Shown here: piece by piece, positions 1,642 to 55,801 of the stretch
How the letters are laid out: every line of letters begins with the position of its first letter
How positions within the stretch are numbered: the first letter of the stretch is position 1
Virus record (IMG/VR): IMGVR_UViG_3300034073_003340
Coordinates: 1-64,000 of that record
Length of the DNA stretch: 64,000 bases
Reading direction: 5' to 3' (one strand)
Made by a program: the position numbers and the translations under genes
The notes under the pieces: generated by a model
What the model saw: the letters and a program-made list of their open reading frames with translations, nothing else
What the model was told of the DNA's origin: nothing
The model's database searches: none

Positions 1642-4221
1642 TTAGAAGCTCATAGGCATAGGAGCGGATCCTATATCATCCGTGTCACCTATGCTTTTCA
1701 AGTTTTCTTCAATCTGCTCTTCCCAGTCGGCGCAAATCTGTAGTAATCTGACTATCTGTAGGGTTCCCATAACCAAGTCGTCATTTACCCCTATTTTGCC
1801 CTTGTAGGAGCCGCCACCGCGTACAAAGTTCTTGAGCTCCGTGAGTAGTGCTCTACTCTTCAAGGTCATTCTACGGGTCTCTACGAGCGTTTTAAAGCGA
1901 GCACAGGCGGTCATCTTTGTTCTACTATTGGTATTCAGACCTTTTCGACCTTTGCCGCCGCCGCTTTTGCGAGGTTCATGTGTGAAAATGCCTGGAAAGT
2001 TCTCCTCCCCAATATTATCAATATGAACCAGGGCTGCTTCACCCAAGCTGTTGTTTTCAACCGACCAGTAGATCTCTGGATCGCCATCTTGGTCTGGGTG
2101 ATTAGCCAAACTGTGATGGATATAAAGAAGAGCCTTACGAAGAATCTCAACCTGATCTTGCGTTACCGTCTTATTATGTCTCCACTCTGCTACTTGCGTC
2201 AAAGTTGTGAGATCAAATACCTGTATTGCCGAGAAGTCAGATCCGGTTCCCATCGAGGGATCAAGTGTTGCGCCATAAATGTGATTGGGTTGAGGCTCTT
2301 CAAACCAGCGCATTTGGCCAATCTTAAAGATCGGTTCCTGTGGGCTCAAGTTGGCTAATGTGAGTGGATTGATAAGAGTTTCATCCTCAGAAACGAACTT
2401 ACACTCGTATTCTCGCTGGAATTTCTCTTCGCCAAGCTGTTGACGCTGGGTCTGGGCCCAAGCTTCATCTCGGGTTGGATTCTTGTCCCAAGTAATTTCC
2501 AGGGGCTTATAACCATTACGACCCAATCCACCAGGAATTACTTCACCATTGTCGTCAATGTTATTCTTAGCACCAAACCAAATCTCAGCGAACTGATCTT
2601 CGTCGTTGTTTGGAGTAGAAGTGATGATACAGCTACCACCCGTAGACAGGGTTGGCGCAATAGCCGACCAGAACTCAACTGCTTTATTGGGCTGAACGAA
2701 CGCAAACTCGTCCAAGTACAGTAGGGAGATGGAAAGACCACGACCTGCGTCCTTGGACGTAGCTCGTGAAATGATTCTGGAGCCGTTGTCAAACGCAATT
2801 GTGCCCTTGTTGTATTCCACAACACCGCTGCGGAGCCAGTTGTACTGCTCGAGATTCTCATAAGCAAAGCGGATACGATCCATGATCTCTAGAGCAGATA
2901 CGAACTTGTTTGCCGCAATGAGAATCGTGGTATCGGGTTCAAACATTGCCTTCCAAAGAAGGAAACCAGCCGCACAAGTCGTATTGTGAGTTGGCACAAG
3001 AGTTTCACCACAAAGGAACAAATGATCCTCATTGTCTACTTGTAGACAACGAACCGGAACGCTAGTGGTGGACTCAATTGATTTGATATAGATTCTAGAA
3101 TTCTTTGGATGATTCTTACAACGCTTTTGACGTTCTAGTTTTCTTTCCAATTTGAAAATATCAAATAGCGACGTAGTAAATCGAACGGACCAGGCCGTCT
3201 TATAACCAGTTTCCCTGCTAGAAACTGTTGATTTGATACCTAGACTACTCAATAGTAGGCGAACTTTTCGCACCATGTTTTCATCACTCTGATAGAAATT
3301 ACAGGTGCCATTCTTTTCCACTGAACCATCGGTATCCATAAGACCGCGGAGAAGTTCAAGACGATTTTCTACTGAGGTGAAGATATACGAATCAGGTATA
3401 TGCTTATTAGAGATCACTCCCAAGTCACGCAACGCAACTTTGAAACCACCAGCAATATTGAAACTACCAGTCGTGTCACTTCTCTTATCTAGCCTAAACT
3501 GAGACGTTCTGAATCCAGCTTCTTCTACAGCCATCTGGTAAGTGGGAAAGTCATCAATATGACAGGTCACACCAGAAGAATTTCTTCCACCATCCCCAAG
3601 CCAGACTCCAAGCAGGTATGGATCTACAGGAAGCTTGCTATCGCTAAACTCTATAGCGGCACAATGTTTAATATGAACGCTCTGTGTGCTTTCGGGTCCA
3701 TATTTTTTGAGACAGTCAATCAGTTCAAGGGTCGTGATTGTCCTCGTCCTATCCTTTTTTAATGGCAATTCAACAGTCCAGAGATGATCCGCATCAGCAA
3801 TAACAGTCTCGCCATGGCTGAATTCTACCCTATAACAGGGGCGATCGTTCATAGTTTCAGTTATGAACTGAATTCTTGTTGGCTTACCATCAGCACCATA
3901 GATAGTGTCACCCACCCTCAGATCACCCATTGTGGTGAATCCACTAGGTGTCAGTATCGGAGTATCCAATGCCAAGGCTTTTCCCATTTGTCGAGCCGTT
4001 AGGGCAATAGTATAGCGATTCTTATGAAAAGCATCGATCATCTCTTCCTGGTAAGGCCAAAGCTTAAAAGGAACTCGACCTTGGGTGGGATGCTGGATCT
4101 TCACATAATTCTTACAGAAGTAGATAGGGTCAGACATACACTTTCTGAGCTCTTCAATCTGATTTAGATTAAAGCGGTCTTTGCTGTACCCTTTTTTAAT
4201 AATTTCAATATCTTTAGCCAT
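1642..4221 (-). CDS. terL: Terminase large subunit (T4 gp17-like) containing an intein
   Basis: Walker A ARQMGK|T split by the intein, Walker B LLYLDEFAF, ITSTPN coupling motif, and RNase H-like nuclease (LDPSMG, NDDLVM). Confidence 0.95.
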   Translation of the reverse strand: MAKDIEIIKKGYSKDRFNLNQIEELRKCMSDPIYFCKNYVKIQHPTQGRVPFKLWPYQEEMIDAFHKNRYTIALTARQMGKALALDTPILTPSGFTTMGDLRVGDTIYGADGKPTRIQFITETMNDRPCYRVEFSHGETVIADADHLWTVELPLKKDRTRTITTLELIDCLKKYGPESTQSVHIKHCAAIEFSDSKLPVDPYLLGVWLGDGGRNSSGVTCHIDDFPTYQMAVEEAGFRTSQFRLDKRSDTTGSFNIAGGFKVALRDLGVISNKHIPDSYIFTSVENRLELLRGLMDTDGSVEKNGTCNFYQSDENMVRKVRLLLSSLGIKSTVSSRETGYKTAWSVRFTTSLFDIFKLERKLERQKRCKNHPKNSRIYIKSIESTTSVPVRCLQVDNEDHLFLCGETLVPTHNTTCAAGFLLWKAMFEPDTTILIAANKFVSALEIMDRIRFAYENLEQYNWLRSGVVEYNKGTIAFDNGSRIISRATSKDAGRGLSISLLYLDEFAFVQPNKAVEFWSAIAPTLSTGGSCIITSTPNNDEDQFAEIWFGAKNNIDDNGEVIPGGLGRNGYKPLEITWDKNPTRDEAWAQTQRQQLGEEKFQREYECKFVSEDETLINPLTLANLSPQEPIFKIGQMRWFEEPQPNHIYGATLDPSMGTGSDFSAIQVFDLTTLTQVAEWRHNKTVTQDQVEILRKALLYIHHSLANHPDQDGDPEIYWSVENNSLGEAALVHIDNIGEENFPGIFTHEPRKSGGGKGRKGLNTNSRTKMTACARFKTLVETRRMTLKSRALLTELKNFVRGGGSYKGKIGVNDDLVMGTLQIVRLLQICADWEEQIEENLKSIGDTDDIGSAPMPMSF
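2983..3978 (-). mobile_element. Class 3 intein (332 aa) with LAGLIDADG homing endonuclease, in the terminase P-loop
   Basis: Starts ALALDTPILTP (Ala1) and ends PTHN|T. WCT signature: block B DHLW, block F VRCLQV, block G PTHN. LAGLIDADG motifs LLGVWLGDG and LLRGLMDTDG. Confidence 0.93.
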
Positions 4222-4266
4222 AGATGAACAAGGGCTCTGATCAACAGACCAGAGCCCTTTCCTATT

Positions 4267-6177
4267 TTAATCGAAGGTCTTTACAGACAGCTTCTTGGTT
4301 GGAGAAACACCGTGTTTAGACATCATATCAACGACCATTTCATAGTTGTTGATAAGATCAAGGGAGGTGAAACTAGCAATCACCTTTCCAGGACGATATT
4401 TGCTTCCGGTAGAGGTCTGAGTAACACAAGTAACTGGTGTCCCATTAGGAGTTCTGCTTAGCCCAGTTACATAGTTGAGACCCTTCTTTCCATTACGATC
4501 AATTTCTAGAACAGTTACACCAGCCCTGCTGCTACCGCTACTCATATCATCAAAATATTGTGCGGTTCCATTCTTGATATCTTCCAAACTAGCGTATCCG
4601 CAATCGGTGTTTAGATAGAAAGGCTCTCCGTATTTGGTATGTGGTGACTTGGAATAGTAGAGTTGAACCTCATCCAGATCTGAATTCTTGAATTCGTCCA
4701 ATAAACTCTCAGCCGTTGGTTCCAAACGGTCTAAGCCTTTTTCACGCTTCCAAGCAATGCGATCATGAGCATTGCGCCATTTTGCCACTCTTTTACCTGC
4801 ACCCTTACGCATAATACCCATGCGTTCAGCTTCTTCAGCATCATGGACTAAATCGTCCAGATCGCCCGCTTTCTTCTCATGATGAGCCTTGCTGTCTCGA
4901 GCCTTGGCAGCATAGCGTCCCTTGAGATCACCACTTAGTTCGTTCAGCTCAGTTTCATCAGAAGCCGTTTGGCTTTCACCAAAATCACCACCCATATCAA
5001 AGCCCAACTCTGCACTGGTGTCTTCTCCGTGATCCTCTTCGCGATTATGTCCAAAATAGCCTACGCCATAGATACCATAACCAAACTTTGGGTTATTGGA
5101 CTTCTTGGAAGCTTCCTCGACATAATCACGAAAGCTTTTTGGAGAAACCGACTCTTCTTGATGGAACTGATTGGTGCTGTGATCAACGGCTTCTTGTCTA
5201 ATTCTATCCATTGTCTTTTGATCGATACGATCAATAATGTCTTCACCAGTTGATTTAACCACTACTGCGGTAAGGTCTAGCGTGCCGCCCATGCTAGCAA
5301 CTGGCATGTGATCCAATCCAGTATCAAAGTCTCCTGAGTCCCAATCATAATGAACGGTAACTTCAACTTCGCCCTGTGGGTGAGTCTCATCTTCAATCCA
5401 GGTGTCAAACTCTTCACTGCCACCGGGCTTATAAGGAGATTCAGTAACCTGCTCGGATACATCAACGTCTTCAAAATCCATATCGTTTAGATAGACAATG
5501 GACTTACCGCCCTTGTGGGTTACTAGCCAAACGCCATCTACCATTGAATCAGGCTTTGCGGTGGCACCATCCATATCATGAGTGCTCATGAAATCTAGAA
5601 ACGCGATCGCACCTTCTTCGGTGTCAGGAAACTTAGTCTTCAGCTTGTCTTCAAACGGTCCTTCGGATAGTGGGTTATCGCCTGAACGAGCTGGAACTCT
5701 TTTTGTATCCGGCTGAACTACTGTTCGGCTAGCAATGCCTGCGTATTCCTGAGGATCAGTTTCATTCGTGCGGTAATCATAATTGGCTTCTTCACCAATC
5801 TTTGGATCAACTAGGTCACTACCCATATCCACTTCTTTGGAAGCTGCCTCTGGACCGTTTGGATCAATTGGATCCACCATATGATCATCGTCGCCGTCCG
5901 AATAGCTCATTGCTGCGAACTGTGGTTCCAAGAGATTCATGATAGAACGTAGATCTGGTGAATTGATGGTGGAGGTCATTGTCGCTCCACCCTCTTGAAC
6001 ATCAACGGTCAAAGTAGCTGGACCATTGAAGGCAGCACTATTACCAGCAATGCCTGCGTTCTTGAGAACCTGAGCCAGTTCAGGAATATCAGCCGCTGTA
6101 ATTGTGGTATTTGATGTCATATCACCATTGCTATTGGAGATATTGAGACTCACTGCCTCATCAATCTTCTTAGTCAT
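4267..6177 (-). CDS. Acidic probable head-internal/prohead core polyprotein
   Basis: 636 aa, very acidic, many (I/L/V)xE-S/A sites. The ELSGDLKGRYAAKA motif resembles ELSRDTQMAYAKKA in 44827..46290. Confidence 0.5.
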   Translation of the reverse strand: MTKKIDEAVSLNISNSNGDMTSNTTITAADIPELAQVLKNAGIAGNSAAFNGPATLTVDVQEGGATMTSTINSPDLRSIMNLLEPQFAAMSYSDGDDDHMVDPIDPNGPEAASKEVDMGSDLVDPKIGEEANYDYRTNETDPQEYAGIASRTVVQPDTKRVPARSGDNPLSEGPFEDKLKTKFPDTEEGAIAFLDFMSTHDMDGATAKPDSMVDGVWLVTHKGGKSIVYLNDMDFEDVDVSEQVTESPYKPGGSEEFDTWIEDETHPQGEVEVTVHYDWDSGDFDTGLDHMPVASMGGTLDLTAVVVKSTGEDIIDRIDQKTMDRIRQEAVDHSTNQFHQEESVSPKSFRDYVEEASKKSNNPKFGYGIYGVGYFGHNREEDHGEDTSAELGFDMGGDFGESQTASDETELNELSGDLKGRYAAKARDSKAHHEKKAGDLDDLVHDAEEAERMGIMRKGAGKRVAKWRNAHDRIAWKREKGLDRLEPTAESLLDEFKNSDLDEVQLYYSKSPHTKYGEPFYLNTDCGYASLEDIKNGTAQYFDDMSSGSSRAGVTVLEIDRNGKKGLNYVTGLSRTPNGTPVTCVTQTSTGSKYRPGKVIASFTSLDLINNYEMVVDMMSKHGVSPTKKLSVKTFD

Positions 6178-7434: not shown

Positions 7435-7862
7435 TTGTCTTCATCCCTGGGCAACTCAAATTCGACAATAGGAGCGTTTGGCTTCAATTTTCTAAACTGA
7501 GATGCTTCACGGAGGCTTTGCTTGCCACCACCAACGCGAACTAAGGCATCTATATAAGTCAGAAAGGTTTCACTTTCATCACCCCAATCTTTCCCAACAA
7601 TGATTTTATCATCTACGGGAAAGCAAGGATAATCTGATGCTTTTGAACACGCGATACCAACGGTGGTCATTTCACCACCGAGTGGATCAACCGCGATTCT
7701 ATAAGCCAAACCTGGTATTCCTTGATCTGTAAGACCAGAAACCATATGGGTTACCATTTTCCCACTTGTAGATTCAACATGATAGATACCTAGGACTATG
7801 AGACGCTTTGCTTCAGTCTCATCAAAAGTACCTTCGCTATAACCAACAATACCAAGTTTCAT
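7431..7862 (-). CDS. SLOG/LOG-superfamily nucleotide-binding protein
   Basis: Rossmannoid pattern MKLGIVGYS...VSGLTDQG...VRVGGGKQSLRE, similar to the LOG/SLOG GGxG(T/S)xxE motif. Confidence 0.55.
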   Translation of the reverse strand: MKLGIVGYSEGTFDETEAKRLIVLGIYHVESTSGKMVTHMVSGLTDQGIPGLAYRIAVDPLGGEMTTVGIACSKASDYPCFPVDDKIIVGKDWGDESETFLTYIDALVRVGGGKQSLREASQFRKLKPNAPIVEFELPRDEDK

Positions 7863-7884
7863 AAATACACCTCTGTGTATTTAC

Positions 7885-8319
7885 TCACCTTTTACCAGCT
7901 TGTCTGTAAAGTTGGCGTTCAGTCATGATACGAAACTTTATGCCATTGGATTTACACCAATTATAGGCAGCTTCCCACTTGGCTTCATTTAGCGTGATGG
8001 CATCAATATCCTTTTGCGTTCGAGCAGCTTCTGGGATGCTCTGACTCAAAGGTTTGATCTCAATTATCTCAGCGTGCTTGGCACCAGTTTTGTCGGTGTA
8101 AAGTATAAAGAAGTCTGGGATATAATTGCGAATCTTTCCAGTGAACGGATCCTGATACTGTATCTTAAGAGACTCGCTTGCCCATTGTTCAACATAAGGA
8201 TGTTGGTCGCATAGATTCATAAAGGTCAATTCCCAAGCGGACCTATATGTGATAGGAAGAGTCCCAACGTATTTTTCTGGGTTCTTGGGTTCAAACGTTC
8301 CTTGATTATAAAACGCCAT
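7885..8319 (-). CDS. Head completion nuclease (T4 gp4-like)
   Basis: F-x-PKNPEKY, YRSAWE, WASE, YIPDF and IEIKP motifs. Confidence 0.88.
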   Translation of the reverse strand: MAFYNQGTFEPKNPEKYVGTLPITYRSAWELTFMNLCDQHPYVEQWASESLKIQYQDPFTGKIRNYIPDFFILYTDKTGAKHAEIIEIKPLSQSIPEAARTQKDIDAITLNEAKWEAAYNWCKSNGIKFRIMTERQLYRQAGKR

Positions 8320-9393: not shown

Positions 9394-10232
9394 TTATAGA
9401 CGGTTGCCAGGAATCTGCTCAGGAAGCGCGGTCATTAGACCGTTTGCCTGCGTTGCGTTATCAAAACGAACAGTCAACGTAATGGTCTGGAAACCGGATT
9501 CAGCATAGTCCAGATCCATGTAGTCAACGTTCTGTAGGAAGCAACCTTCAAGCGTCCATGTCTCAACGACAGTGTCATTGCCACCGTCCATGGTCTCAAT
9601 AATGGTTACAAACTTATAGTTGATACCAGAAGCAAAAGCCGTCTGCTCAAAGTGGTTGAGCTGCTTCTGTAACTGGTGCCCAACAAGCTTAGCAACGTTG
9701 TTGGTCAAGTCATCCTTGAGAACAATCTGCAAGGTCTCCCACGTATGCTTACCAGCATAGTAGGCGGTGCTGTTGTAACTATGAACAGGAACTTCTTCGT
9801 GGGCAATTTTTGGTTTGCCAACGCTCTGAACCTGCTGGGTGAAGTCGAGACCACCTGCGATTGGACCAAAGTTAACCACGCGGACGCGGAAGCGATACTT
9901 ATACTTGAGTTGGAGAAGACCACCGCGGCCCTGTCCGCCTCCAAGTGGAACCATTTGTATTCAATCAGTGTCGTTAATACTGATCCGCCTTACGGCTGCT
10001 CATTGTTACCAATGAGATTAGACTATATCATGACCCACTTGGGGCCCCACCCGTTTCAGCCCACTTGGGCCTACGACCTTTCGGTCTAGTCGTTGAACGT
10101 TCCGGTTCATAACTCCGGCTTCGCTGCTGATTGTCCCTGAGGGATTTTCCAGCAATTAGAGTGGTTTTTCGACCAGGATCACTCCTGGAAGCAGCTATTC
10201 CTTTAACCGAACTTAGATAGAGTTTCTGCCAT
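9394..10232 (-). CDS. Tail tube protein (T4 gp19-like), spliced: exon 1 10232-10206, exon 2 9951-9394 (194 aa)
   Basis: GGAGG RBS plus ATG GCA GAA ACT CTA TCT AAG TTC GGT (MAETLSKFG) joins in frame to GTT CCA CTT (VPLGGGQGRGGLLQ...KYRFRV). Also YYAGKHTW and W-x-L-x-GCF tube motifs. Confidence 0.92.
9952..10205 (-). mobile_element. Group I intron (subgroup IA-like, 254 nt, no internal ORF)
   Basis: P AATTGCTGGAAA, Q AATCAGCAG, R GTTCAACGACTA, S ATGATATAGTCT. Exon-terminal U pairs with G in P1 (CGGU|UA with UAGCUG). P10 GGAAU pairs with exon 2 GUUCC. P3 CCACTC/GGGTGG. P7.1 GACC-GAAA-GGTC and P7.2 GCCC-AAGT-GGGC. Terminal omega-G. Confidence 0.95.
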
Positions 10233-10329
10233 GACGATATCACCTCCTAGGTAACGATCTATTTTGATTATTTAGCGTTTCAGATTGTAAATAGAAACAA
10301 TTAGAAACTTTTAGAAGATTTGGAGTTCA

Positions 10330-11142
10330 ATGTATTACGTTTATACCTTGTGTGATCCAAGAAGAGATGACCAACCATTTTATGTTGGCAAGGGATCACG
10401 AGACCGATGTAAGTCCCATCTATATGAAACGTATCAGAATACGAGCAATCGCCGCAAGTGGTGTAAGATAGCTGCTATTAAGAAGTCCGGGCTTGAAGTT
10501 ACTATCAAAAAGATTCAAGAGGATTTATCAGAGTCTGATGCTTATGATCTGGAAGAAGAATTAATCAAGAAGTACGGTAGAATAGGCTATGAATCCAATG
10601 GCATCTTAACCAACATATGTGAATCTTCTCGTCCTCCCTCTGCTAAAGGAAGAATGATATCAGATGAAACTCGTAGAAAGCATAGTGAACGCCAAAAAGG
10701 TCCACTAAATCATAGATATGGTATCAAGATGTCAGATGAGGAAAAGGAATATAGGCGTCGATTTAATTTAGAAAATGGTATCAGACCGCCTGATAGGACA
10801 GGGGTTTCCCACACTGAAGAGACCAAAATCAAGATGAGTCTAGCCAGCAAAGGTAAGAAGAAAAGCCCTGAGCATTGTAAGGCGATTGGTGAAGCTCGTC
10901 GTGGAAAATCTCTAGGACCATGTTCCAATGAGAAAGCCAAGAAAATAGCAGAATCACAGTATAGAAACTATCAGCTTACTAGCCCTGAAGGTAAAAATTA
11001 CACAGTGAACACAAGTAAACTAAGAGAGATGATAAAGATATTCAATTGGTCATATGGGGGAATCATGGCAGCTAAAATTGCTGGGAGAAAATATCGAGGT
11101 TGGACTATTTTAGATCTGGGACGATCTAAAATACCAGATTAA
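10330..11142 (+). CDS. Free-standing GIY-YIG-type homing endonuclease with NUMOD3-like repeats
   Basis: YYVY...PFYVGKG...R...H catalytic module and basic GxxxSxETxxKxS repeats. Opposite strand to its neighbours. Confidence 0.85.
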   Translation: MYYVYTLCDPRRDDQPFYVGKGSRDRCKSHLYETYQNTSNRRKWCKIAAIKKSGLEVTIKKIQEDLSESDAYDLEEELIKKYGRIGYESNGILTNICESSRPPSAKGRMISDETRRKHSERQKGPLNHRYGIKMSDEEKEYRRRFNLENGIRPPDRTGVSHTEETKIKMSLASKGKKKSPEHCKAIGEARRGKSLGPCSNEKAKKIAESQYRNYQLTSPEGKNYTVNTSKLREMIKIFNWSYGGIMAAKIAGRKYRGWTILDLGRSKIPD

Positions 11143-12051
11143 CTAGTATTCCTGAACCGCGACGATTTTAGCCTTAGTGGTCAGATATTCCCAAAGAGGA
11201 TCATCAGTTGGTTTCCCAGCCCAATAATTTTCTGCGGCTGTTTTGAGTTCCTGGCTATCATAGTCGTGTCCGTCGTCTACCAGGGAAGATATAAGACTAG
11301 ACCAGTTCATATCATGCTTATAAACAGGCCCTAGAGGTTGTAAGGTGAACACGTATTCAGTTGAGCCTCCCGCCGAATCCAAATCATCTTCATTACTAAC
11401 CATGAAAACCGCATCACGGTGAGAAAGCTTGTCGGCTGGTCGATAGCGTTCTAGAACTTCAAAAAACGGCACATATCCCCAGTCACGATCATAATCACTT
11501 CCTCGACCGGTTAGGATCGTTCCTACGTCTAATTCATTGACGCTGGAGTGATAATAGAGACGAGTATTCAAAGATTCTTCCAGTTGTCCTGGAGTGATAG
11601 ATTTCATAAATTTCAGGAAAGTGGAGGTAGAAATGTTCCAATCTGTGGAATTTTCAACCATTCTTACCAAATTAGGCGCATACAGATCAAAATTAAAAAC
11701 CGCAGACTCAAAATCGTTGTATTCTCGTTCTATCCAATCAGCAATAGAATCATTGGTGACTTTTCCGTCGCCGTCAAACAGAGAACCCCTTACATAAACC
11801 GCAACGTGATAGACTCTAGCATCCGAAGTCAGAATATCTTCTGGCTCAGCTTCATCTCCATCTCCATATACGTCCTCACAGATTACTACTATTCTGGGGA
11901 CCTCACCTTGCTCTTCGAGAATCGTAGCCAAAGCCAAGGCAAATGTCCCACAGTTTCCTGAGAATAGATTACCACTACCAAAATGAGATTGGCAAGAATT
12001 TATCAAACCAACAATATCCAATTTGGATTCAGAGATTTCAGACCAGCGCAT
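11143..12051 (-). CDS. Two-domain protein: papain-like Cys-His-Asp domain plus Arr-like ADP-ribosyltransferase-like domain; probable head-packaged effector
   Basis: NCGTFALAL / YHVAVY / FDGDG in the N-half. LYYHSS...L-x-VGTIL...AVFMV...YW-x-G...WEYL in the C-half. Each domain is preceded by an xxES site. Late promoter upstream. Confidence 0.55.
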   Translation of the reverse strand: MRWSEISESKLDIVGLINSCQSHFGSGNLFSGNCGTFALALATILEEQGEVPRIVVICEDVYGDGDEAEPEDILTSDARVYHVAVYVRGSLFDGDGKVTNDSIADWIEREYNDFESAVFNFDLYAPNLVRMVENSTDWNISTSTFLKFMKSITPGQLEESLNTRLYYHSSVNELDVGTILTGRGSDYDRDWGYVPFFEVLERYRPADKLSHRDAVFMVSNEDDLDSAGGSTEYVFTLQPLGPVYKHDMNWSSLISSLVDDGHDYDSQELKTAAENYWAGKPTDDPLWEYLTTKAKIVAVQEY

Positions 12052-13337: not shown

Positions 13338-15080
13338 TTACTTCGAGAAGAAATCGCTCATCACCTGGGGAGCATCCTGGCTAAAGCCAACTACGTCCAA
13401 CATACCAGCGTCCTTGGGGTCCGCAATGGTACAGCTGGTCGCAGTCATACCAACCACAACAGACTTAGCAGGGATGCCAGTCTTCTGTCGGTAAGTCTTC
13501 AGAGCCTGAGAAGGAGCCTGACGACCCGCATAGGTCTCGTTGTCCGTGTAGACAGCGAAGTTCTCCACGGGCAGCTTGTTATCAAGCGCCCACTCAAAGG
13601 GTAGCGAGCAGTCCGTGTTACCGAACGGCAGGCCCGAGATCGTGTTGATCACGTCATCCAGTCGCTGACGCGGACTGATCTTCAGGATCGACACCGGACC
13701 AGCATCCTTGACGTTGGCGTTCATGCGACCTCCATAGCCGTAACCATAGCCGCTACGACCACTGCCACCAGTGAATCCAATGAACTCATAAGAGTTCTCG
13801 ACATTCGCCGTGATCAACGCCATAGCCGCCGAAGCGTCACGAGCAGTTAGTCCCGGAATGTTGCCGATGGCAGCACTGCCCATGGACCCCGACACGTCAA
13901 GAGCTAGCAGCGTATTCTTGCCGGTCGGGGCCACATTGCCAAACGAGGCATAAAATGCCTGGTCGAGCGAGTCTACAACGCCGCGAACGACGTTCCAGGA
14001 CAGACTACCCTTGAAACCACGACCCTGACCGTAGGTCTTCATCGCAGCAAGGATAGCAATTGGGTGAACACGAGCCTTGCGAAGAGCCTCACCATCGGAA
14101 AGCTTGGCCTTGACCAGCTTCTCGGCGGCAGACATCGGAGTCAGAAGACCAACACTTGACATCTTGCCCAGGTTACGAATCATCGCAGTCAGCGACATGT
14201 TGGTCAGCAAAGCCTCCCAAACATTGGCATCGTTAAGGAACTGAGTGGGAATCGCCTCACGAGGAAGGTTGTGATCCACAATCAGCTGGATGATCTCCTT
14301 GGCAGAAGTTGCCTTCTTTGCCGCCTCAAATGCGAGAATCTGAGGGTGGAGAACACCAGACACGTCAGAACGGGACAGGCGAACCTCGCTTTCAAGATTT
14401 GCCGAGCCACGAACGTAGTCCGTAGCACCAACATTCGACATTCCACCAACCATCCAACGCAGGACAGCATCACGCGCAACATCGTCCGTCTTGGGGTGAC
14501 CCAGACGAAGCATGTCACGGTGCGACCATCCATCGCGCTGCTGATACTTGATCGCCTGGTTAGCCAGCCGGTCAAGTGGCATCTCTAGATACCAGTTACC
14601 TACTGCTCGACGTAGAGCGCGCCCCCAACCGCGAACGCCGTCCACAAAGGCAGCAAAGTGGAACAGATGGGTTCCAATCCGAGCGACCTTGGGTAGAGCG
14701 TCAAGAGCAGCCTTACGAGTTGCCTCGCTGTCAGCTGCCGATGCTAGAGCCAGAACGAATAGAGCAGGGTCGTTCTTGGGAGCGCGGCCAGAGTCACTGA
14801 TCTCTACCACACGATTTACAACGCGGATGCCATCCTCGTCAATTAGACGCAGGACGTTCTGAGCATTGGACTTGGTCAGCTCGCGCTCACCCACATAGTA
14901 GGTTCCACCCTCGGTTCCGAGGATCAGGAAGCGATCAAGCTGATCCCATGGAGAAACCACGAAGGTGAATCCACCGGCGTTATTCTTGGCCATTTCCGAC
15001 TCACGGCCCGGAATGGGCTGAGTCTGCGGCGTCTGCTTGGAAGCAATGGCACCCATCAGGACGTTCTTGGAATTACTCAT
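13338..15080 (-). CDS. rsr: Ro60/TROVE-vWA RNA-binding protein (Rsr)
   Basis: NNAGGFTF, LDRFLILGTEGGTYY, IKYQQRDGWSHRD, ALDVSGSM (MIDAS), VYTDNET and GMLDVVGF. GAGGAG RBS before ATG 15080. Confidence 0.95.
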   Translation of the reverse strand: MSNSKNVLMGAIASKQTPQTQPIPGRESEMAKNNAGGFTFVVSPWDQLDRFLILGTEGGTYYVGERELTKSNAQNVLRLIDEDGIRVVNRVVEISDSGRAPKNDPALFVLALASAADSEATRKAALDALPKVARIGTHLFHFAAFVDGVRGWGRALRRAVGNWYLEMPLDRLANQAIKYQQRDGWSHRDMLRLGHPKTDDVARDAVLRWMVGGMSNVGATDYVRGSANLESEVRLSRSDVSGVLHPQILAFEAAKKATSAKEIIQLIVDHNLPREAIPTQFLNDANVWEALLTNMSLTAMIRNLGKMSSVGLLTPMSAAEKLVKAKLSDGEALRKARVHPIAILAAMKTYGQGRGFKGSLSWNVVRGVVDSLDQAFYASFGNVAPTGKNTLLALDVSGSMGSAAIGNIPGLTARDASAAMALITANVENSYEFIGFTGGSGRSGYGYGYGGRMNANVKDAGPVSILKISPRQRLDDVINTISGLPFGNTDCSLPFEWALDNKLPVENFAVYTDNETYAGRQAPSQALKTYRQKTGIPAKSVVVGMTATSCTIADPKDAGMLDVVGFSQDAPQVMSDFFSK

Positions 15081-15097
15081 GATCTGTACTCCTCTTT

Positions 15098-15252
15098 TCG
15101 GCTCGTGAAACCCACGAGCAAGGTTGGCCTCTGACATCAAGGCCGGTAGTTCGATCTAGGGAGTGGGGTGACGGCCACTCGGCTCACAGCTTACGCTGTG
15201 ATTGAGAAACGGACGGTTTTCTATAGAAACACAAAGCGGACGGGCTTTGTGA
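15098..15252 (-). ncRNA. Structured RNA immediately upstream of rsr (leader or Y-RNA-like candidate)
   Basis: Six consecutive hairpins in about 155 nt. Three have CCGUC-containing loops and one has a GUAA tetraloop. Confidence 0.5.
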
Positions 15253-15259
15253 TAATGCC

Positions 15260-15562
15260 TTATAACTGGGCTTGGTTTGCCTCGTCAAGAGTCTTTTTTA
15301 GAACTTCTAGCACTTCTGCCTTGCTTCCAAAAATACCACTCATTGAGACTGGATTTGTAATAGCAACATGGATTACCGTCGGACTAAAAAATCTGATGAT
15401 TCCATAGCCTTCAAATCGACCGTTTCCAGGCTTGCGATTGTTCCATCTGGTTCGATACTTACCGCCCACACTGTAGACGTCATATCTATAATTGTTTTCG
15501 ATGCCCAGCAAATCTGAGACATCCTGGTAGAACTTTTCTACCTCACTGATTTCCTTTTCCAT
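15260..15562 (-). CDS. Phage hypothetical protein
   Basis: 100 aa ORF (RWNNRKPGNGRF motif) with TTGACA-N17-TTAAAT directly upstream. Confidence 0.7.
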   Translation of the reverse strand: MEKEISEVEKFYQDVSDLLGIENNYRYDVYSVGGKYRTRWNNRKPGNGRFEGYGIIRFFSPTVIHVAITNPVSMSGIFGSKAEVLEVLKKTLDEANQAQL

Positions 15563-15604
15563 ACTCTATTTAAGCATAGATTTGGAATCTTGTCAACTCA
15601 ATGG

Positions 15605-16425
15605 TTGTCGGGTAGCACGAACTCTACCCGACGAGGCTCCACCACCATATAGGTATTGGATAAAAGTAAAGGTCTCGTTCGTGAGACCACCCCTGCGTCA
15701 TCAACAACATGGCACTTTGGACCGCAAGGTCCGAAGAGCAAGTAACGAGGTGGACCGGGCTAGTGTATTGAGATCGAAATCTTAATACCTATATCTCCCT
15801 AAGCAGACCGAAGCCTGTTTCCATGTTGTTGAGTCAGCGTGTTAGGTTACTTTCTAGTAAGATAACCCACCATCATCGGCTCTCGATCTATTTATTTGGG
15901 GGTCTCCGGAGACCGAAGTCTCCGGAGGGCAAGTTGACTAGGTCTTTCCAGCGCCAACTTGCGGGGCTTGATAAATCAGATACTTGGTCTGATCACACCT
16001 ACTGAGTCCTATGCCTTTCAGACCCAACGCGTCTAGGGGAAGTTACTCAAGGCCCCCATGTTTCCGATCAAGGTAGTTAAGGAGGAACCAAATCTAGGCC
16101 TTATGACCGAAGCCCGCCTATCCTCTTTATTCGTTTTAATAGCGTTGGTGACACTATTTAAACTACTAAACCTCACCGTCGCACGCTAGGATGAGGGTGA
16201 GGGGTGATCCTTCCCTCAACATAACTACCATGTGGGACCGAAATCCCAGATCACTAGGGACACTCGCAAGCGCCCCGTCGCACTTTACCAGGTCGATTCC
16301 TGGACTTTTGTTCTCCTCCGGTGCCGTCCGGCAGATACCTTTATGTGTCAGCACACACCCCAGTCGCCAAGAACAAAATATATGGGTTCAAGAGCCTAGG
16401 CTCCTCCGTGCCGTTTAACCGTTGT
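15605..16425 (-). ncRNA. Large structured non-coding region, possibly three tandem ~250-280 nt RNAs
   Basis: No credible ORF. Five UUCG-capped hairpins, G-U pairs that only work on the minus strand, a 12-bp and an 11-bp long-range helix in pseudoknot order, and internal TAAATA motifs at 16155-16160 and 15889-15894. Confidence 0.7.
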
Positions 16426-16464
16426 ATATTAGATCCTTTTGAATCGCAATATTCTATTCATGGA

Positions 16465-16492
16465 AATGGAGAGAGTTTTACCTCTCTCCATT
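16465..16492 (-). terminator. Hairpin terminator after tail sheath
   Basis: AATGGAGAGAG / CTCTCTCCATT 11-bp stem just after the sheath stop. Confidence 0.7.
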
Positions 16493-16495
16493 CTC

Positions 16496-26827: not shown

Positions 26828-26887
26828 CGGCATAGAAGCCCGTGCGGCACATTGTGAACACCTAGCCGGACGTAACCAGTAGACTGG

Positions 26888-27112
26888 TCAAATATCCGGT
26901 GTAACGTTCTTGCGGGCTTCTATCTGCTCCACAAACCATTGCGTTGAATGCTCTGCTGAGCAAAAGTCTACTCTTACTTCAGTGTATTCACAGATATCAG
27001 GATTGGCCCAATATATACCACGGCCATACTCGTCTTTGACGTAGCTGGGATCAGAAACCGGCTTACCACAAACCTTACACCTGGACACAAGAGAATTCAT
27101 CAAATCAAACAT
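26888..27112 (-). CDS. Small Cys-rich hypothetical protein
   Basis: 74 aa with CxxC...C...FCS pattern. Confidence 0.5.
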   Translation of the reverse strand: MFDLMNSLVSRCKVCGKPVSDPSYVKDEYGRGIYWANPDICEYTEVRVDFCSAEHSTQWFVEQIEARKNVTPDI

Positions 27113-27142
27113 ATTGACTCCGTTCGTGCGAACTCATTACTG

Positions 27143-27556
27143 GTGTCGCAAAGAAAGGTCAAGGATATGCGCGAAACTATCAGCAGAAAACTTCTTATAC
27201 GATATCAGGACGATGACGGCGAATATGTGTTCTTGTCTGGTTTTGAGAACGGTAAACGCGGGGAAATGGCTGTTTTTGAAGGCTTTTCAATTGAAGATGC
27301 TAGAAATCTCGAAGGGCTCTGCGACGATGTAGTTCTAGAAGTTTTTGAGGCTTTTCAAAAAGCCAATAGACTCAAAAGCTGCGAATTTGTGAGAATCACC
27401 ACATCCGAAATTATAGATGATTTCCTAGAAGGCGATGAACGTCTGCGTGAAGTTCGACAGATGGCCGCAATATCAAAGCTCACTGAGAGTGAAATCAAGG
27501 CTCTGGATTTGACCAATATCGCGGTCTATATCAAAACCAAGTATCATAACACATGA
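27143..27556 (+). CDS. Hypothetical protein, paralog family A
   Basis: C-terminal LR...A-x-x-KLT-x-x-E-x-x-AL...VY-x-K-x-K-x-HNT, shared with the next gene. Confidence 0.7.
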   Translation: MSQRKVKDMRETISRKLLIRYQDDDGEYVFLSGFENGKRGEMAVFEGFSIEDARNLEGLCDDVVLEVFEAFQKANRLKSCEFVRITTSEIIDDFLEGDERLREVRQMAAISKLTESEIKALDLTNIAVYIKTKYHNT

Positions 27557-27987
27557 AAACTTTCATAGAAAAAAGAAGAGTCATTCTCATCAAAACCCTT
27601 TGGGAAATTGGCGAGTTCGCTCCAAACGAATGCTATTTCTACGAGAGACCTCGAGGAATGAGCGACAACAAGGGAAAATCTTTGGCTGGCCATGCCCGAT
27701 GGGCTGGGGTGAATGATATAAGAGATGCTACCAATTTAGAAGGCATGAGCTCTGACGAGGTCCTGGATCTTTTTTACCAGATAAAAGATTTGCTAGACGA
27801 CGGTGATACCATAGAAATAATAGATCTCGTTCTTACAATGAGCCATACGCCAGTTTCATTTGATCCCGATTTGGAAAAAGAATTCCTACGCGAAAAAGCT
27901 TTGAAAAAGCTCACACTGGATGAAATAGCAGCTCTCGGAGTAACCAATCTCGCCGTCTATTCAAAGGTAAAAAACCATAATACTTGA
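27553..27987 (+). CDS. Hypothetical protein, paralog family A
   Basis: C-terminal LREKALKKLTLDEIAALGVTNLAVYSKVKNHNT. Confidence 0.7.
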   Translation: MKTFIEKRRVILIKTLWEIGEFAPNECYFYERPRGMSDNKGKSLAGHARWAGVNDIRDATNLEGMSSDEVLDLFYQIKDLLDDGDTIEIIDLVLTMSHTPVSFDPDLEKEFLREKALKKLTLDEIAALGVTNLAVYSKVKNHNT

Positions 27988-28011
27988 CTCCTGAGCACAA
28001 TCTGTTAGATC
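27984..28011 (+). promoter_or_regulatory. Early/host-sigma promoter TTGAC(A/T)-N16-TA(G/A)AT (representative)
   Basis: Same 16-nt spacing, usually with TG(T/C) before the -10, at + 33514-33541, 34651-34678, 37931-37958, 46372-46399 and - 21178-21205, 21871-21898. Confidence 0.75.
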
Positions 28012-28029
28012 AAAAATCGAGGAGAATTT

Positions 28030-52587: not shown

Positions 52588-52811
52588 GGCTCTTGGGAAC
52601 TCCACCTGAAGATGTTCCAATGATTCTTCAGGAATATGTAGACGACGCAAGAGCCTTAGAAAATCAGCTTATACAGATTGCGTTTTATATGAGAGGTGGT
52701 TGCCCTCTTGATCAAGCTTATAAGCTAACGAATCGTCAGAGAAAGAACACTCTGAAGTTCATTGAAGAAAATATCGAGAGAACAAACAAGACCGGGGTCA
52801 TGATGCACTAA
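52582..52811 (+). CDS. Small gp51-like chaperone domain, possibly expressed by -1 frameshift from the gp26-like gene
   Basis: Open -1 frame across T TTT TTC at 52575-52581; I-x-FYMRGG...AY...QR...FI-x-EN motif. Confidence 0.55.
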
Positions 52812-53188
52812 AGAGTTCCATGCTCTAGAAAAATTCCGGCCAGATTGGAGTCACGACGAACATGACAAAGCTCAAGATCAAGACCCTGAGAGACCTCCTT
52901 GAATTGTTTGAACAAGTCGATAAGCAATTGGTTATTGATCTTCCAAAGACCAGAAGCTTGATTGATGACCAATTGACTGTCACCAAAAATGACAGCCTTT
53001 TGGATGCCATTGTCTTTGGCCCAAATAACCGCCCAGACCAAAGCTGACCATTCAGCGATATTATTGGTTCCCTGACCCAGGTCCTTCATCGTAAGGGCTT
53101 GAGGCTTTTCCCCATCCCTGCATATAACAATACAGCTAGACATCTTTCCTGGGTTTGGGGAACAACCACCATCAAAATATATGTTCAT
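52808..53188 (-). CDS. rnhA: Ribonuclease HI-family protein
   Basis: FDGGCSPNPG, TNNIAEWSAL, GDSQLVINQ...W and HV-x-R-x-x-N. Confidence 0.88.
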   Translation of the reverse strand: MNIYFDGGCSPNPGKMSSCIVICRDGEKPQALTMKDLGQGTNNIAEWSALVWAVIWAKDNGIQKAVIFGDSQLVINQASGLWKINNQLLIDLFKQFKEVSQGLDLELCHVRRDSNLAGIFLEHGTL

Positions 53189-53244
53189 TCACCAATTTAG
53201 CTTATCTGAATCCTCGGTGTCAATCAGTCGCAGATATTCCAAAC

Positions 53245-54060
53245 CTCTTTGGGCTATTAGCCCATAACGTTCACCTCGAACTTACGTTCGAGGACTAAGG
53301 TGTTTCATTTAGCTTTCTTCGCTTACGCTCATTCGCTAATTCAACACCTTAGTGAGGACATTGTTCAATGCTGTTCTGAAAAACTAGATTTATCATCAAT
53401 CAACATCACCAATTGCCAGAACTTTAACGACATATCAATTACTCAGGACGAATTAATTGATAACAAGTAACTGAGCTTTCTGGCATGCCAGAAAGTGAAG
53501 TAGGACTTGCGTTGCGAAGCTAGCAAGGCCTCTTAACCTTAATGGATAATCGATCAATTCATTCAGTCACACTGACTTCCCCCGTCTCCGGGAGAAGTTC
53601 AAAAAATGAATGAAATCTACAATTTTAGGGATTCACACAATATGACTGGCGTGGACAGTTCAGAGGATCCTAGGTCTGCCATTATATCCTGCACCTTTTC
53701 AGTGCTCACTGCCGCTTCTGTGTAATCGGTCTCCAGCTGGAGTACCTTTCCACACAGGACGGTCGGTAGTTCGTTACGCTACCACTCAACATCTCCATTG
53801 CTCACGCCAGCGGCTCCGGAGACTTGCTCGTTTCTTTTCAAAACGAGTCTAGTCTTTGACTAGGGCGTCCCACTCTTTGGAGAGCGAGGGACCTGCCTAG
53901 ATTTCCAGGACGTTGCCGAAGCCATCTCCAGATCCATTCTAGATCCGTTGAAGTTCCTCTGGGGTTTAGCACGTAGCCACTTTCCCAGCCCATGGTCGCC
54001 GCCCAATACAGCGCTCTCCGGGGGTTCGAGGGCATGATCTGCGCCTCCACTGCCTTATCT
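53245..54060 (-). ncRNA. Large ornate structured non-coding region (ncRNA and/or replication origin candidate)
   Basis: No credible ORF. Nested hairpins capped by GUAA, GAGA, GAAA and C(UUCG)G loops on the minus strand, with G-U pairs favouring minus. Perfect 20-bp palindrome at 53476-53495. Confidence 0.65.
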
Positions 54061-54190
54061 TTCTCACACTTCAGCTTCCAAAAACTGATAAATAAGTATG
54101 TAAAGGACGGGTATGTTATTGGGTGTGTTTTTAGCTCAATAATAAATTACAAGGTGTCGTGGTAGTCCCAGGTGACCGTTCTTAGTGTAT

Positions 54191-54240
54191 GGGCCCCGGT
54201 TGGAACTTCTAGTTCCTCCGGGGCTCTTTGTTTTTGTTTT
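54191..54240 (+). terminator. Plus-strand intrinsic terminator within the non-coding region
   Basis: GGGCCCCGG...CCGGGGCTC stem followed by TTTGTTTTTGTTTT. Confidence 0.7.
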
Positions 54241-54368
54241 GTGTTCAAGAGCTATAAAGTAGAATCTGTAACTATCCTCTTGTGGGATATTTAGTACACA
54301 GATCAGACCGTTTCTACGGCCTCGATTCAGCTACATCTGATAATCGATCTGAGGAGAATGTTGGTCTC

Positions 54369-55196
54369 TCATTCAAAACATCTCCTATTCGTATTCATCA
54401 TAATAGATGTTTTGATCATAGGAGCATTCGTATACTCTAGATAGTATGGTACCTGGCTATGCTTTATGTCAACAAACCAGGATTCTTTTTCTTCATTGGA
54501 TTGATAATGGAGTATAGCCATATTCCAGCGACGATCAGACGCTAGATCATATCCATCAACTTTTACCGGTGTTTTACTATATGGTGTATAGATATGGGTT
54601 TGATCTAGATCACTGAGATACTCAATTCTCGATAGTGCCATTCTGGGCATCTGGAGACAGCTTCGGTGATTTAAATCACACTCTCCCAATAGGTTGATTG
54701 GCTTAGAAAGTTTGTCTTTTTTCATGAACTTGGAGGCCTGGATTCTATAGAAATCCAAGAATACTCTCGCCATGCTCTTTCTAATCTGAGGGTCAATCCT
54801 GGTCTCTTTAGCAGCCAGGTTAAGAGTGTATAAAATACTCTCATTCAGAAACCGCTGGCCCAGAACGTTTCTACCTAGCAACATCCTCCGGTGTGGTTCC
54901 AAATGTTCAGGTAGAGAGATATCTTCAGATGCGTTTAAAAATGGAGTAATGGACGTTCCATACTCAGCCAAAGTTTCCCAAAGTCTTGTCCAATCCTTAT
55001 GAAGAGAAAGCAAAACAGTAGGATTGGTTCGAACTTTGGAACTCAGCCCAGATACTAAATGATTGTGATAGTAGAGTTCCTCTTTTATGAACCCTTTGAA
55101 GCAAGTCTTGTCAGCAAAAGCTAGATTAATCATAATTCTCAAATCACGAAATTTAGCGTTCACATTCAACTCCTTTCTGATATCAACATGCGGCAA
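54369..55196 (-). CDS. Hypothetical protein resembling the WED/REC half of TnpB/Cas12f, lacking RuvC
   Basis: By-eye register with TnpB: INL...YYHNHLV ~ LYP...FVYNHFL; HIYTPYSKTPVKV ~ LKLPKLGWVK; WNMAILH ~ LNVTVRR; SWFVDIK ~ HYEASV. The ORF ends before any RuvC-I Asp. Confidence 0.4.
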   Translation of the reverse strand: MPHVDIRKELNVNAKFRDLRIMINLAFADKTCFKGFIKEELYYHNHLVSGLSSKVRTNPTVLLSLHKDWTRLWETLAEYGTSITPFLNASEDISLPEHLEPHRRMLLGRNVLGQRFLNESILYTLNLAAKETRIDPQIRKSMARVFLDFYRIQASKFMKKDKLSKPINLLGECDLNHRSCLQMPRMALSRIEYLSDLDQTHIYTPYSKTPVKVDGYDLASDRRWNMAILHYQSNEEKESWFVDIKHSQVPYYLEYTNAPMIKTSIMMNTNRRCFE

Positions 55197-55261
55197 TCAG
55201 GGTTACCTTGTCTATATTCTGGTGTTAATAAATACCTACATAATTGGAAAAAGGATACTTC

Positions 55262-55801
55262 ATGACTAGCCGACAAAAATCCAAAGGTAACGCCTGGGAA
55301 AACGAAATTTGTAAGTTCTTTGGAGAAACCCTGGGAGGTAACTTTCAGCGAGTCCCAAACTCAGGAGCATACATCGGTGGTAAGAACGTATACAGAAAAG
55401 ATCAATTATCTGAGGGACAGGCGCGAGCTGCCAAAGGGGATATCATCCCACCGGATGATCTACCAAAATTGAATATCGAAGCCAAGAACTATGGTGATAT
55501 TGCGTTCCATCAGATTCTTGACGGATGCTGTAAGCAACTTGACACCTGGATTGATCAAACTGAGGAACCAGCAGATCCTGGTGATTTCTCTATGACCATT
55601 TTTAAGATCACCCGCAGGGGAAGTTGGGTCGCTTTCAAATCAGAGAATCTGGCTAATTTTGATATGACTGGCTTGTCTTATGTTACGTATCGAAAAGGCT
55701 TTGGATCTGAAAATGCCTGTGATTATATCATTGTCAGTCACGTCCCATTTTTCACCCAAAACAAGTTGGCAGTGAGAAAATTAGGTGGCGCTGAAAATTG
55801 A
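55262..55801 (+). CDS. Holliday junction resolvase (Hjc-type PD-(D/E)xK)
   Basis: SKSKGN-x-WE-x-EI, F-x-RVPNSGA, GDII-x-P and IEAKNY. Confidence 0.85.
   Translation: MTSRQKSKGNAWENEICKFFGETLGGNFQRVPNSGAYIGGKNVYRKDQLSEGQARAAKGDIIPPDDLPKLNIEAKNYGDIAFHQILDGCCKQLDTWIDQTEEPADPGDFSMTIFKITRRGSWVAFKSENLANFDMTGLSYVTYRKGFGSENACDYIIVSHVPFFTQNKLAVRKLGGAEN

Follow-up and report, generated by a model that had tools for sequence, protein, structure and literature searches.

The window, by which we mean the whole 64,000-nucleotide (nt) stretch of DNA analysed here (positions 1 to 64,000 of IMG/VR virus record IMGVR_UViG_3300034073_003340), contains a gene, here called X, whose product is confidently predicted to be a RuvC-less protein with the fold of the TnpB/Cas12 recognition lobe (WED plus REC) and without a zinc finger. 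The gene is followed directly by module 1, a new and strongly covarying RNA of 177 nt, and an RNA island containing the EGFOA motif lies beside it. We are confident of both RNA assignments, and that X is a real gene. The link between X and TnpB/Cas12 is at the level of the predicted fold only. An earlier reading of the DNA letters and translated reading frames alone (the original prediction) had proposed a RuvC-less TnpB/Cas12-like protein at this position, followed by a structured RNA and forming with it a candidate RNA-guided DNA-binding system.

Gene X and its predicted fold

The longest open reading frame (ORF) of gene X is the one given in the original prediction, 275 amino acids (aa) from a TTG start, at 54369..55196 on the minus strand. 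A product of 264 aa from GTG 55163 is more likely, because AAGGAG lies 7 nt upstream of this codon and the N-terminus of the homologue P0002 (MKAKFRDL) aligns with window residue 12. The public 254-aa call of the gene would remove the first β-strand (residues 8-12) of the structural model described below.

54369..55163, minus strand: gene X, predicted WED+REC TnpB/Cas12-like protein, 264 aa from GTG 55163, stop codon at 54369-54371

Relatives were fetched from IMG/VR and JGI metagenomes, using a 10-sequence alignment as the query, and by exact-protein look-up; these loci carry numbers with the prefix L, and the ORF of X is intact at all loci compared. A word-indexed search of 5.8 billion proteins found a single relative of X, with 57% identity, and a search of the same set with the X profile returned unnamed family members only. 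An exhaustive hidden Markov model search of 1.84 billion representatives identified at least 159 X-family clusters (E<=1e-3), all of 160-345 aa, among which there was no full-length intermediate of TnpB size or carrying RuvC. The family is basic, with a median isoelectric point of 9.4, and six of its residues are near-invariant (E29, N34, K167, Q171, W229 and Y240). The 108 aligned members matched no Pfam, NCBIfam or PHROG family, neither the 108-sequence profile nor the single sequence matched any PDB sequence, and three family members gave no tblastn match in 50,697 deposited phage genomes. No TnpB genes were present among the fetched X loci, and no published RuvC-less TnpB/Cas12 family was found in the literature consulted.

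Modelling of X by AlphaFold2 from the 108-sequence alignment gave a predicted local distance difference test score (pLDDT) of 93.8 and a predicted template modelling score of 0.88. The alignment was required, as with only two sequences the pLDDT was 41 and the model unusable; the ESM Atlas, whose model of the protein is poor, gave no information. In the AlphaFold2 model a single strand, b1 (residues 8-12), is followed by helices (16-147), six further strands (169-234) and a disordered tail, such that a seven-stranded WED β-barrel is predicted to be split after its first strand by a helical REC domain. In ISDra2 TnpB the WED domain comprises residues 1-12 and 117-176, REC (residues 13-116) is inserted after strand 1, and RuvC starts from residue 185 (PMC10097598). 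The domain order of X in the model is the same, and the chain ends about 30 residues past the last WED strand, stopping where RuvC would begin. RuvC, with its D-E-D triad, is absent from the model and no OrfB_IS605 match was found; likewise, there are no CxxC pairs and no zinc-ribbon Pfam match that would point to a TNB/zinc ribbon. The domain order that had been read from the sequence by eye thus holds as to the strand, helical insert and strands, as seen with both AlphaFold2 and Foldseek, but the strands are arranged 1+6 and not 1+4. That X ends before RuvC-I agrees with the predicted fold, which has no RuvC part, and with the short lengths of all 159 clusters.

A comparison with TnpB and Cas12f by AlphaFold and Foldseek had been suggested as a check, and the confident model found nearly all of its matches among TnpB, Cas12 and Fanzor proteins. 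Twenty of the 21 top matches in the PDB were TnpB, Cas12, TranC or Fanzor2 entries, including RdCas12n, Cas12p, the ISDra2 and ISFba1 TnpB proteins, several Cas12f and dCas12f structures, Cas12o, TranC, Cas12k, Cas12m, Fanzor2 and other Cas12 proteins. Foldseek probability was 0.63-1.0 in 19 of the 20 superfamily matches and 0.35 in the remaining one, a Cas12f entry. The sole unrelated entry, in the region of rank 22, had a probability of 0.06, and unrelated folds in the list did not exceed 0.14. E-values for the PDB matches were between 5e-4 and 8e-2 and TM-scores between 0.22 and 0.42, over alignments of 235-446 columns (235-275 for the TnpB and Cas12f matches). Against BFVD, two X-family members came first (TM 0.79, A0A345MN37), followed by TnpB/Fanzor 'transposases' of giant viruses and phages.

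These matches might also be explained by convergence at the level of the fold, or by very ancient descent of a module made of an oligonucleotide/oligosaccharide-binding barrel and a helical bundle, in which case X would never have had a RuvC domain and would not be a domesticated TnpB. The low TM-scores and the range of E-values are consistent with this, as are the absence of any sequence signal, by single sequence or profile, against PDB, Pfam and NCBIfam, the absence of signal in the searches of 5.8 and 1.8 billion proteins, and the lack of an intermediate carrying RuvC. Homology to TnpB, which the original prediction had put forward as a pattern match, received no profile support in the sequence searches. 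Convergence is harder to reconcile with alignments that cover both domains (235-275 columns) and place REC after b1, with matches that fall almost only in the TnpB/Cas12 superfamily in two libraries (PDB and BFVD), and with an RNA at the 3' end of the gene that mirrors the ω-RNA layout. We consider it rather unlikely.

Structured RNAs downstream of gene X

The 1.18-kb gap between gene X and the next gene, which encodes an RNase H, extends from 53189 to 54368 and is without credible ORFs. Module 1 starts about 17 nt past the X stop codon and is preceded by a short hairpin, H0.

54353..54370, minus strand: H0 hairpin (GAGA..TCTC) between the X stop codon and module 1, read from 12 loci
54175..54351, minus strand: module 1, 177-nt structured RNA with a consensus fold and covariance model R1, no Rfam family
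54337-54346/54323-54330, minus strand: H1 of module 1, with the invariant loop AUGUAG
54317-54322/54305-54310, minus strand: H2 of module 1, a conserved inner hairpin
54297-54304/54263-54270, minus strand: H3 of module 1, enclosing UAAAUA (54288-54293) and H3b
54284-54289/54273-54279, minus strand: H3b of module 1, inside H3
54251-54262, minus strand: invariant single strand CUACUUUAUAGC of module 1, conserved to about 30% protein identity
54212-54224/54193-54206, minus strand: H4 of module 1, after an A-rich linker and bearing a bulge

The consensus of four sequences contains five helices, an architecture on which single-sequence folds agree, and was used to build the covariance model R1. No Rfam family corresponds to module 1. 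R1 matched directly 3' of X, on the same strand, at 13 distinct loci (the window, L001, L005-L014 and L034, the last truncated where its contig stops). The X proteins encoded there show 29-100% identity, and in the 12 other than L034 the element begins 5-29 nt past the X stop. Scores were 57-198 bits, with 197 bits in the window and 57-61 bits at L005 and L006, where X is about 30% identical. Even at this distance the 5' AGAUCG, which is unpaired, H1 with its loop AUGUAG, UAAAUA and CUACUUUAUAGC are all invariant. The GUAG of the H1 loop may pair with CUAC, a pairing whose invariance precludes a covariation test.

Compensatory changes occur in 32 of the 40 base pairs of module 1. In the alignment 91.3% of cells are paired, against 26-44% with slid partners, and none of 500 shuffles reached the observed values; the alignment was fitted to the R1 model, which makes these statistics somewhat favourable to it. 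The folding z-score of module 1 in the window is -4.27. A strict motif scan of IMG/VR located module 1 at 11 places, comprising 10 X loci and one chance match inside a baseplate ORF; this pattern was used in place of a looser one that gave chiefly chance matches. The window holds no further copies of the invariant motifs. H0 has 7-9 bp in the relatives, with a wholly different sequence, and is weak (4-5 bp) in the window; it is never followed by a U-tract.

A compact three-way junction had originally been drawn at 54299-54351. Two of its arms, H1 (54323-54346) and H2 (54305-54322), are conserved, but its closing stem CAGATC/GATCTG is not and is wrong, because GATCTG pairs downstream and AGATCG never varies. 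The segment GATCTGTG (54297-54304) covaries with 54263-54270, forming H3, and the same is seen for GAUCUGUG and CACAGAU, which lies downstream.

The rest of the gap contains a linker, a second and larger RNA, and one weaker match.

54122..54174, minus strand: variable linker (53 nt) between modules 1 and 2, 42-50% identical to L001, with indels
53560..54121, minus strand: module 2, multi-helix RNA of about 560 nt folded with RNAalifold, its 3' part (53652-53794) EGFOA-like
53410..53594, minus strand: weak manA-like match (lead only), RF01745 at 20.7 bits against a gathering score of 55.2

The linker is a candidate guide or an unconstrained spacer, and its divergence from L001 is the neutral expectation from saturated synonymous sites. 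For module 2, RNAalifold with six sequences gave 145 pairs, 43 of them compensatory. With module 1 (z-score -4.3, 0/500 shuffles), this substantiates the approximately 1 kb of structured non-coding DNA that had been described from the letters alone. The match to EGFOA (RF02955), whose gathering score is 37.7 bits, reaches 35.9 bits in the window and 33.5-37.5 bits at six further loci (L007, L008, L010, L013, L035 and L288), and is thus sub-threshold at all seven; the closing helix of this domain shows G-C to A-U compensation. Module 2 homology was also detected downstream of distant X genes, at L035 and L288 (nhmmer E 2.5e-22 and 1e-5). According to its description, EGFOA is a putative small RNA found in gene-free regions of unusual length, and EGFOA and manA RNAs form RNA-only oligomers that assemble without protein (bioRxiv 10.64898/2026.07.01.735769). 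The 1.18-kb gap is such a gene-free region. The manA-like match was not found in the relatives at E<=0.1.

Between the window and L001 (about 11060-11640), module 2 shows a single difference over 411 aligned positions (99.8% identity). Because the synonymous sites of the neighbouring genes are saturated in the same comparison, with proportions of synonymous differences of 0.56-0.72, this near-identity suggests either recent exchange of the RNA segment or extreme constraint. The site has other contents elsewhere: in a second phage group (L009, L011, L012 and L014) module 1 is followed by about 770 nt of unrelated, strongly folding sequence (z-score -4.7), and L289 and L290 have another hairpin-rich gap downstream of X. 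The strongly folding or hairpin-rich non-coding DNA at L009 6011-6785 and L290 1760-2330 can be listed separately as unclassified phage RNAs.

Genomic setting and the relation between X and module 1

The window comes from a metagenomic contig of 435,856 bp that is found both at JGI (3300034073) and in IMG/VR. It carries genes for a T4-type major capsid protein, sheath, portal, baseplate hub protein and a gp46/gp47-like nuclease; the T4-type structural genes and this nuclease, on a contig of such length, therefore identify the DNA as that of a giant T4-like phage. The gene order is gp47, gp46, radical SAM, small ORFs and the PDDEXK_15 nuclease (plus strand), then divergently gene X (minus strand), the 1.18-kb gap and RNase H (minus strand), followed by the baseplate hub genes.

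55244..55801, plus strand: PD-(D/E)xK nuclease, divergent from gene X (Pfam PDDEXK_15, 9.3e-23; PHROG 244 'RusA-like resolvase')
52808..53188, minus strand: RNase H (type 1-like), downstream of the RNA island (Pfam RVT_3, 1.5e-10, and RNase_H, 4.8e-7; PHROG 531)

The synteny of X is fixed across all compared loci, and the PDDEXK_15 nuclease gene is its most constant neighbour. In the original prediction this gene was an Hjc resolvase; a divergent nuclease gene is indeed present, but its matches are to Pfam PDDEXK_15 and PHROG 244 only. The protein has no sequence relative in the PDB. The RNase H predicted downstream was confirmed by its Pfam and PHROG matches; the gene is found in group A and B loci but not at every X locus. 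As had also been stated, no transposase lies within 10 kb on either side of X by the precomputed Pfam list, no separate tandem-repeat or CRISPR search having been made. The gaps contain neither tRNA nor tmRNA genes, and a promoter/terminator scan of the gene X region gave no informative result. X is probably best regarded as a basic protein that binds nucleic acid and whose gene has a fixed place in the recombination/replication block of an uncultured T4-like phage clade. In L017 the usual position of the PDDEXK_15 gene upstream of X is occupied by a gene for a SegE-type GIY-YIG homing endonuclease (3729-4808, minus strand), and in L038 a 356-aa ORF lies at this position (3609-4679, minus strand).

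In the mechanism we propose, X would be a nuclease-free protein limited to the recognition lobe of the TnpB/Cas12 fold, in which a helical REC insert divides a WED β-barrel. In the branch of the window phage it would most likely be co-transcribed with module 1, about 17 nt past its stop, and would probably bind this RNA through the invariant elements, namely the H1 loop, UAAAUA, CUACUUUAUAGC and the H4 bulge. Such a gene-then-RNA layout, as in TnpB and its ω-RNA, would yield a ribonucleoprotein able to recognise, but not to cut, nucleic acid. Co-transcription, RNA binding and any guide function are steps that we infer.

Several observations favour this partnership. Module 1 is adjacent to X on the same strand with no terminator between them; the hairpin after the X stop has no U-tract where module 1 follows, and mostly has a U-rich run after it where module 1 is missing. 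Module 1 was found nowhere apart from X in the strict IMG/VR motif scan, and X is positively charged. To our knowledge, every known protein of the TnpB/Cas12 fold works with an RNA from the 3' end of its own gene, which counts both for the partnership and against an X that acts alone. The binding of module 1 by X as an ω-RNA-like partner is plausible but unproven, and we would put its chances at somewhat under even.

A considerable body of evidence weighs against the partnership. The other major X clade (L015-L027, L037 and L038) is without module 1, and its X genes end in a terminator-like hairpin, with a clear U-tract in most loci. Within its own clade module 1 is absent from L035, L288, L289 and L291; at L035 X has its own intrinsic terminator, followed by about 200 nt of AT-rich DNA and then module 2, while L288 retains only the hairpin and AGATCG and L291 is without any gap. 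X proteins from loci without module 1 keep all six near-invariant residues. Recombination also uncouples X from the body of module 1, with the breakpoint exactly at the end of H1: L012 and L013 share 95% DNA identity over the part of the locus that runs from its start to H1, X and H0 included, blastn similarity ends at the last base of the invariant H1 (position 5877), and the X proteins are identical whereas the module 1 bodies are only 57% identical. As the RNA contents differ by lineage at the same site, the site downstream of X is an RNA-gene hot spot, and adjacency alone is no proof of partnership. The rate at which X evolves in the window, considered below, makes it an outlier. At the protein level no sequence-profile link connects X with TnpB/Cas12, by single sequence or 108-sequence profile (Pfam, NCBIfam and PDB sequences), and in TnpB half of the ω-RNA surface, and likewise half of the heteroduplex channel, is formed by RuvC (PMC10097598). 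Searches for a guide in the segment after H4 gave only chance-level 11-mers against the local contexts and no second site in the window, and a 14-mer scan of IMG/VR for a target gave only chance matches among the matches listed. No target promoter or complementary site was found in the local contexts.

Many of these points would be accounted for if X acts alone, or with the PDDEXK nuclease and gp46/47, as a phage DNA/RNA-binding protein of recombination/replication, with the downstream RNAs being independent genes in a recombination-prone hot spot and the adjacency reflecting the shared ancestry of a syntenic clade. The persistence of the same invariant residues in many lineages without module 1, the terminator and AT-rich spacing at L035, the change of RNA content with lineage (type A, type B and others) and the separation of X from the module 1 body by recombination all point in this direction. 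The 99.8% identity of module 2 between phages with saturated synonymous sites suggests that the RNA segment moves independently, and a published study found that no protein is needed for the assembly of EGFOA and manA RNAs (bioRxiv 10.64898/2026.07.01.735769). An independent X fits less well with the strict scan, which did not find module 1 away from X, and with the start of module 1 only 5-29 nt from the stop in 12 loci, with no terminator between. We regard an independent role for X as a serious possibility, falling a little short of an even chance.

The X proteins of the window and L001 (genes at 54369-55163 and 10001-10801) are 54% identical, compared with 83-98% for seven neighbouring proteins, six of which are 90-98% identical. 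The nonsynonymous rate (dN) of X in this pair is 0.37, about ten times that of the neighbours, and the ratio of nonsynonymous to synonymous rates (dN/dS) is about 0.16. The K-R-H motif of the family is replaced in both proteins, by RSC in the window. In other phage pairs X changes about as fast as its neighbours. The rapid change and the lost motif residues would be expected if the window X were a decaying remnant of a truncated TnpB and the downstream RNA a leftover ω-RNA. However, the family comprises 159 clusters of uniform short length in conserved synteny, dN/dS is well below 1, no locus has a disrupted ORF, the 1.2-kb gap consists of covarying RNA and not of degraded coding DNA, and there is no IS context. 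A pseudogene is therefore very improbable, being largely refuted by family size, uniform length and dN/dS, and was rejected.

The more far-reaching form of the partnership is that X and module 1 make up a minimal nuclease-free RNA-guided DNA-recognition particle, with a TnpB-type REC lobe as its only protein part, in which the RNA would make up for the missing nuclease (NUC) lobe and sites marked in the DNA of phage or host would be handed to the PDDEXK nuclease, RNase H and gp46/47, with the seeding of R-loop-dependent replication/recombination as a possible use. This seems improbable to us, and RNA-guided R-loop formation for replication/recombination is speculative, with a low likelihood. 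With about 240 structured residues, X would be the smallest scaffold of this type by a wide margin, should it prove RNA-guided. It would follow from a conserved family made up solely of the recognition lobe that the lobe is able to work, and to be selected for, in isolation. The locus also adds a new, strongly covarying 177-nt RNA class, gives the orphan EGFOA motif a genomic home in an RNA island by X in T4-like, often giant, phages, and offers a simple test system of one gene plus 200 nt.

Some other features were recorded in the course of the analysis. In several of the loci without module 1 (L015-L021, L025 and L038; e.g. L019 5807-6094) beyond the X terminator lie a sigma-70-like promoter (TTGGCT-N17-TATTAT), accompanied by recurring GGCTCA/ACGTT boxes, and then a conserved basic ORF of about 90 aa. 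Elsewhere in the window, a group I intron (RF00028, 85 bits; 9999-10215, minus strand) adjoins an ORF at 10330-11142 (plus strand) with GIY-YIG and NUMOD3 homing-endonuclease domains. A phage Ro60 orthologue with TROVE and Ro60 vWA domains (13338-15140, minus strand) lies in a patch of 52-55% GC in a genome of 44% GC; after it, 15141-16495 comprises 1.36 kb with no ORF of 150 aa or more and no Rfam match, where Y-RNA-like partners could be encoded. At 26828-28029 and 7435-8318 the window again has some 0.9-1.2 kb in which no ORF reaches 150 aa.

Comparison with known systems

Among known RNAs, module 2 resembles EGFOA (RF02955) in that its domain lies in a long gene-free region and scores consistently at 33.5-37.5 bits in seven loci. 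It differs in that all of these scores fall below the gathering score of 37.7, and in that the domain makes up the 3' portion of a longer RNA, of about 560 nt. The resemblance to manA (RF01745) is far below threshold, at 20.7 against 55.2 bits.

IscB and IsrB, with their large ω-RNA, provide a precedent for an RNA replacing a missing protein domain. A preprint describes Nop5 as derived from IS110 by loss of RuvC, an RNA-guided transposon protein having thereby become an RNA-binding scaffold (bioRxiv 10.1101/2024.06.21.599552). Both IscB/IsrB and Nop5/IS110 have other folds and belong to other lineages than X, making the analogy a conceptual one only.

Within the TnpB/Cas12 fold, all described non-cutting descendants of which we are aware retain the RuvC fold. 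TldR, the dCas12f-sigma factor systems, Cas12k and Cas12m are domesticated, immobilised, non-cutting derivatives of the fold predicted for X, and are used for binding. They keep the full RuvC fold with mutated catalytic residues (PMC10691335). X differs from TldR-type proteins in that its whole NUC lobe is missing and no promoter match was found in the local contexts.

From TnpB of the IS200/IS605 elements (e.g. ISDra2), X is distinguished by having no RuvC, TNB zinc finger or C-terminal domain and no sequence-profile similarity, and by its single-copy, fixed syntenic position in phage genomes, with neither TnpA nor transposon ends. Module 1 differs from the ω-RNA of TnpB in starting after the X stop and not inside the ORF, and no guide was found in our searches. 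The features that X shares with TnpB are its basic character, a predicted WED barrel that opens with one N-terminal strand and is interrupted by the helical REC domain and, at the loci with module 1, a same-strand structured RNA of roughly 180 nt at the gene's 3' end.

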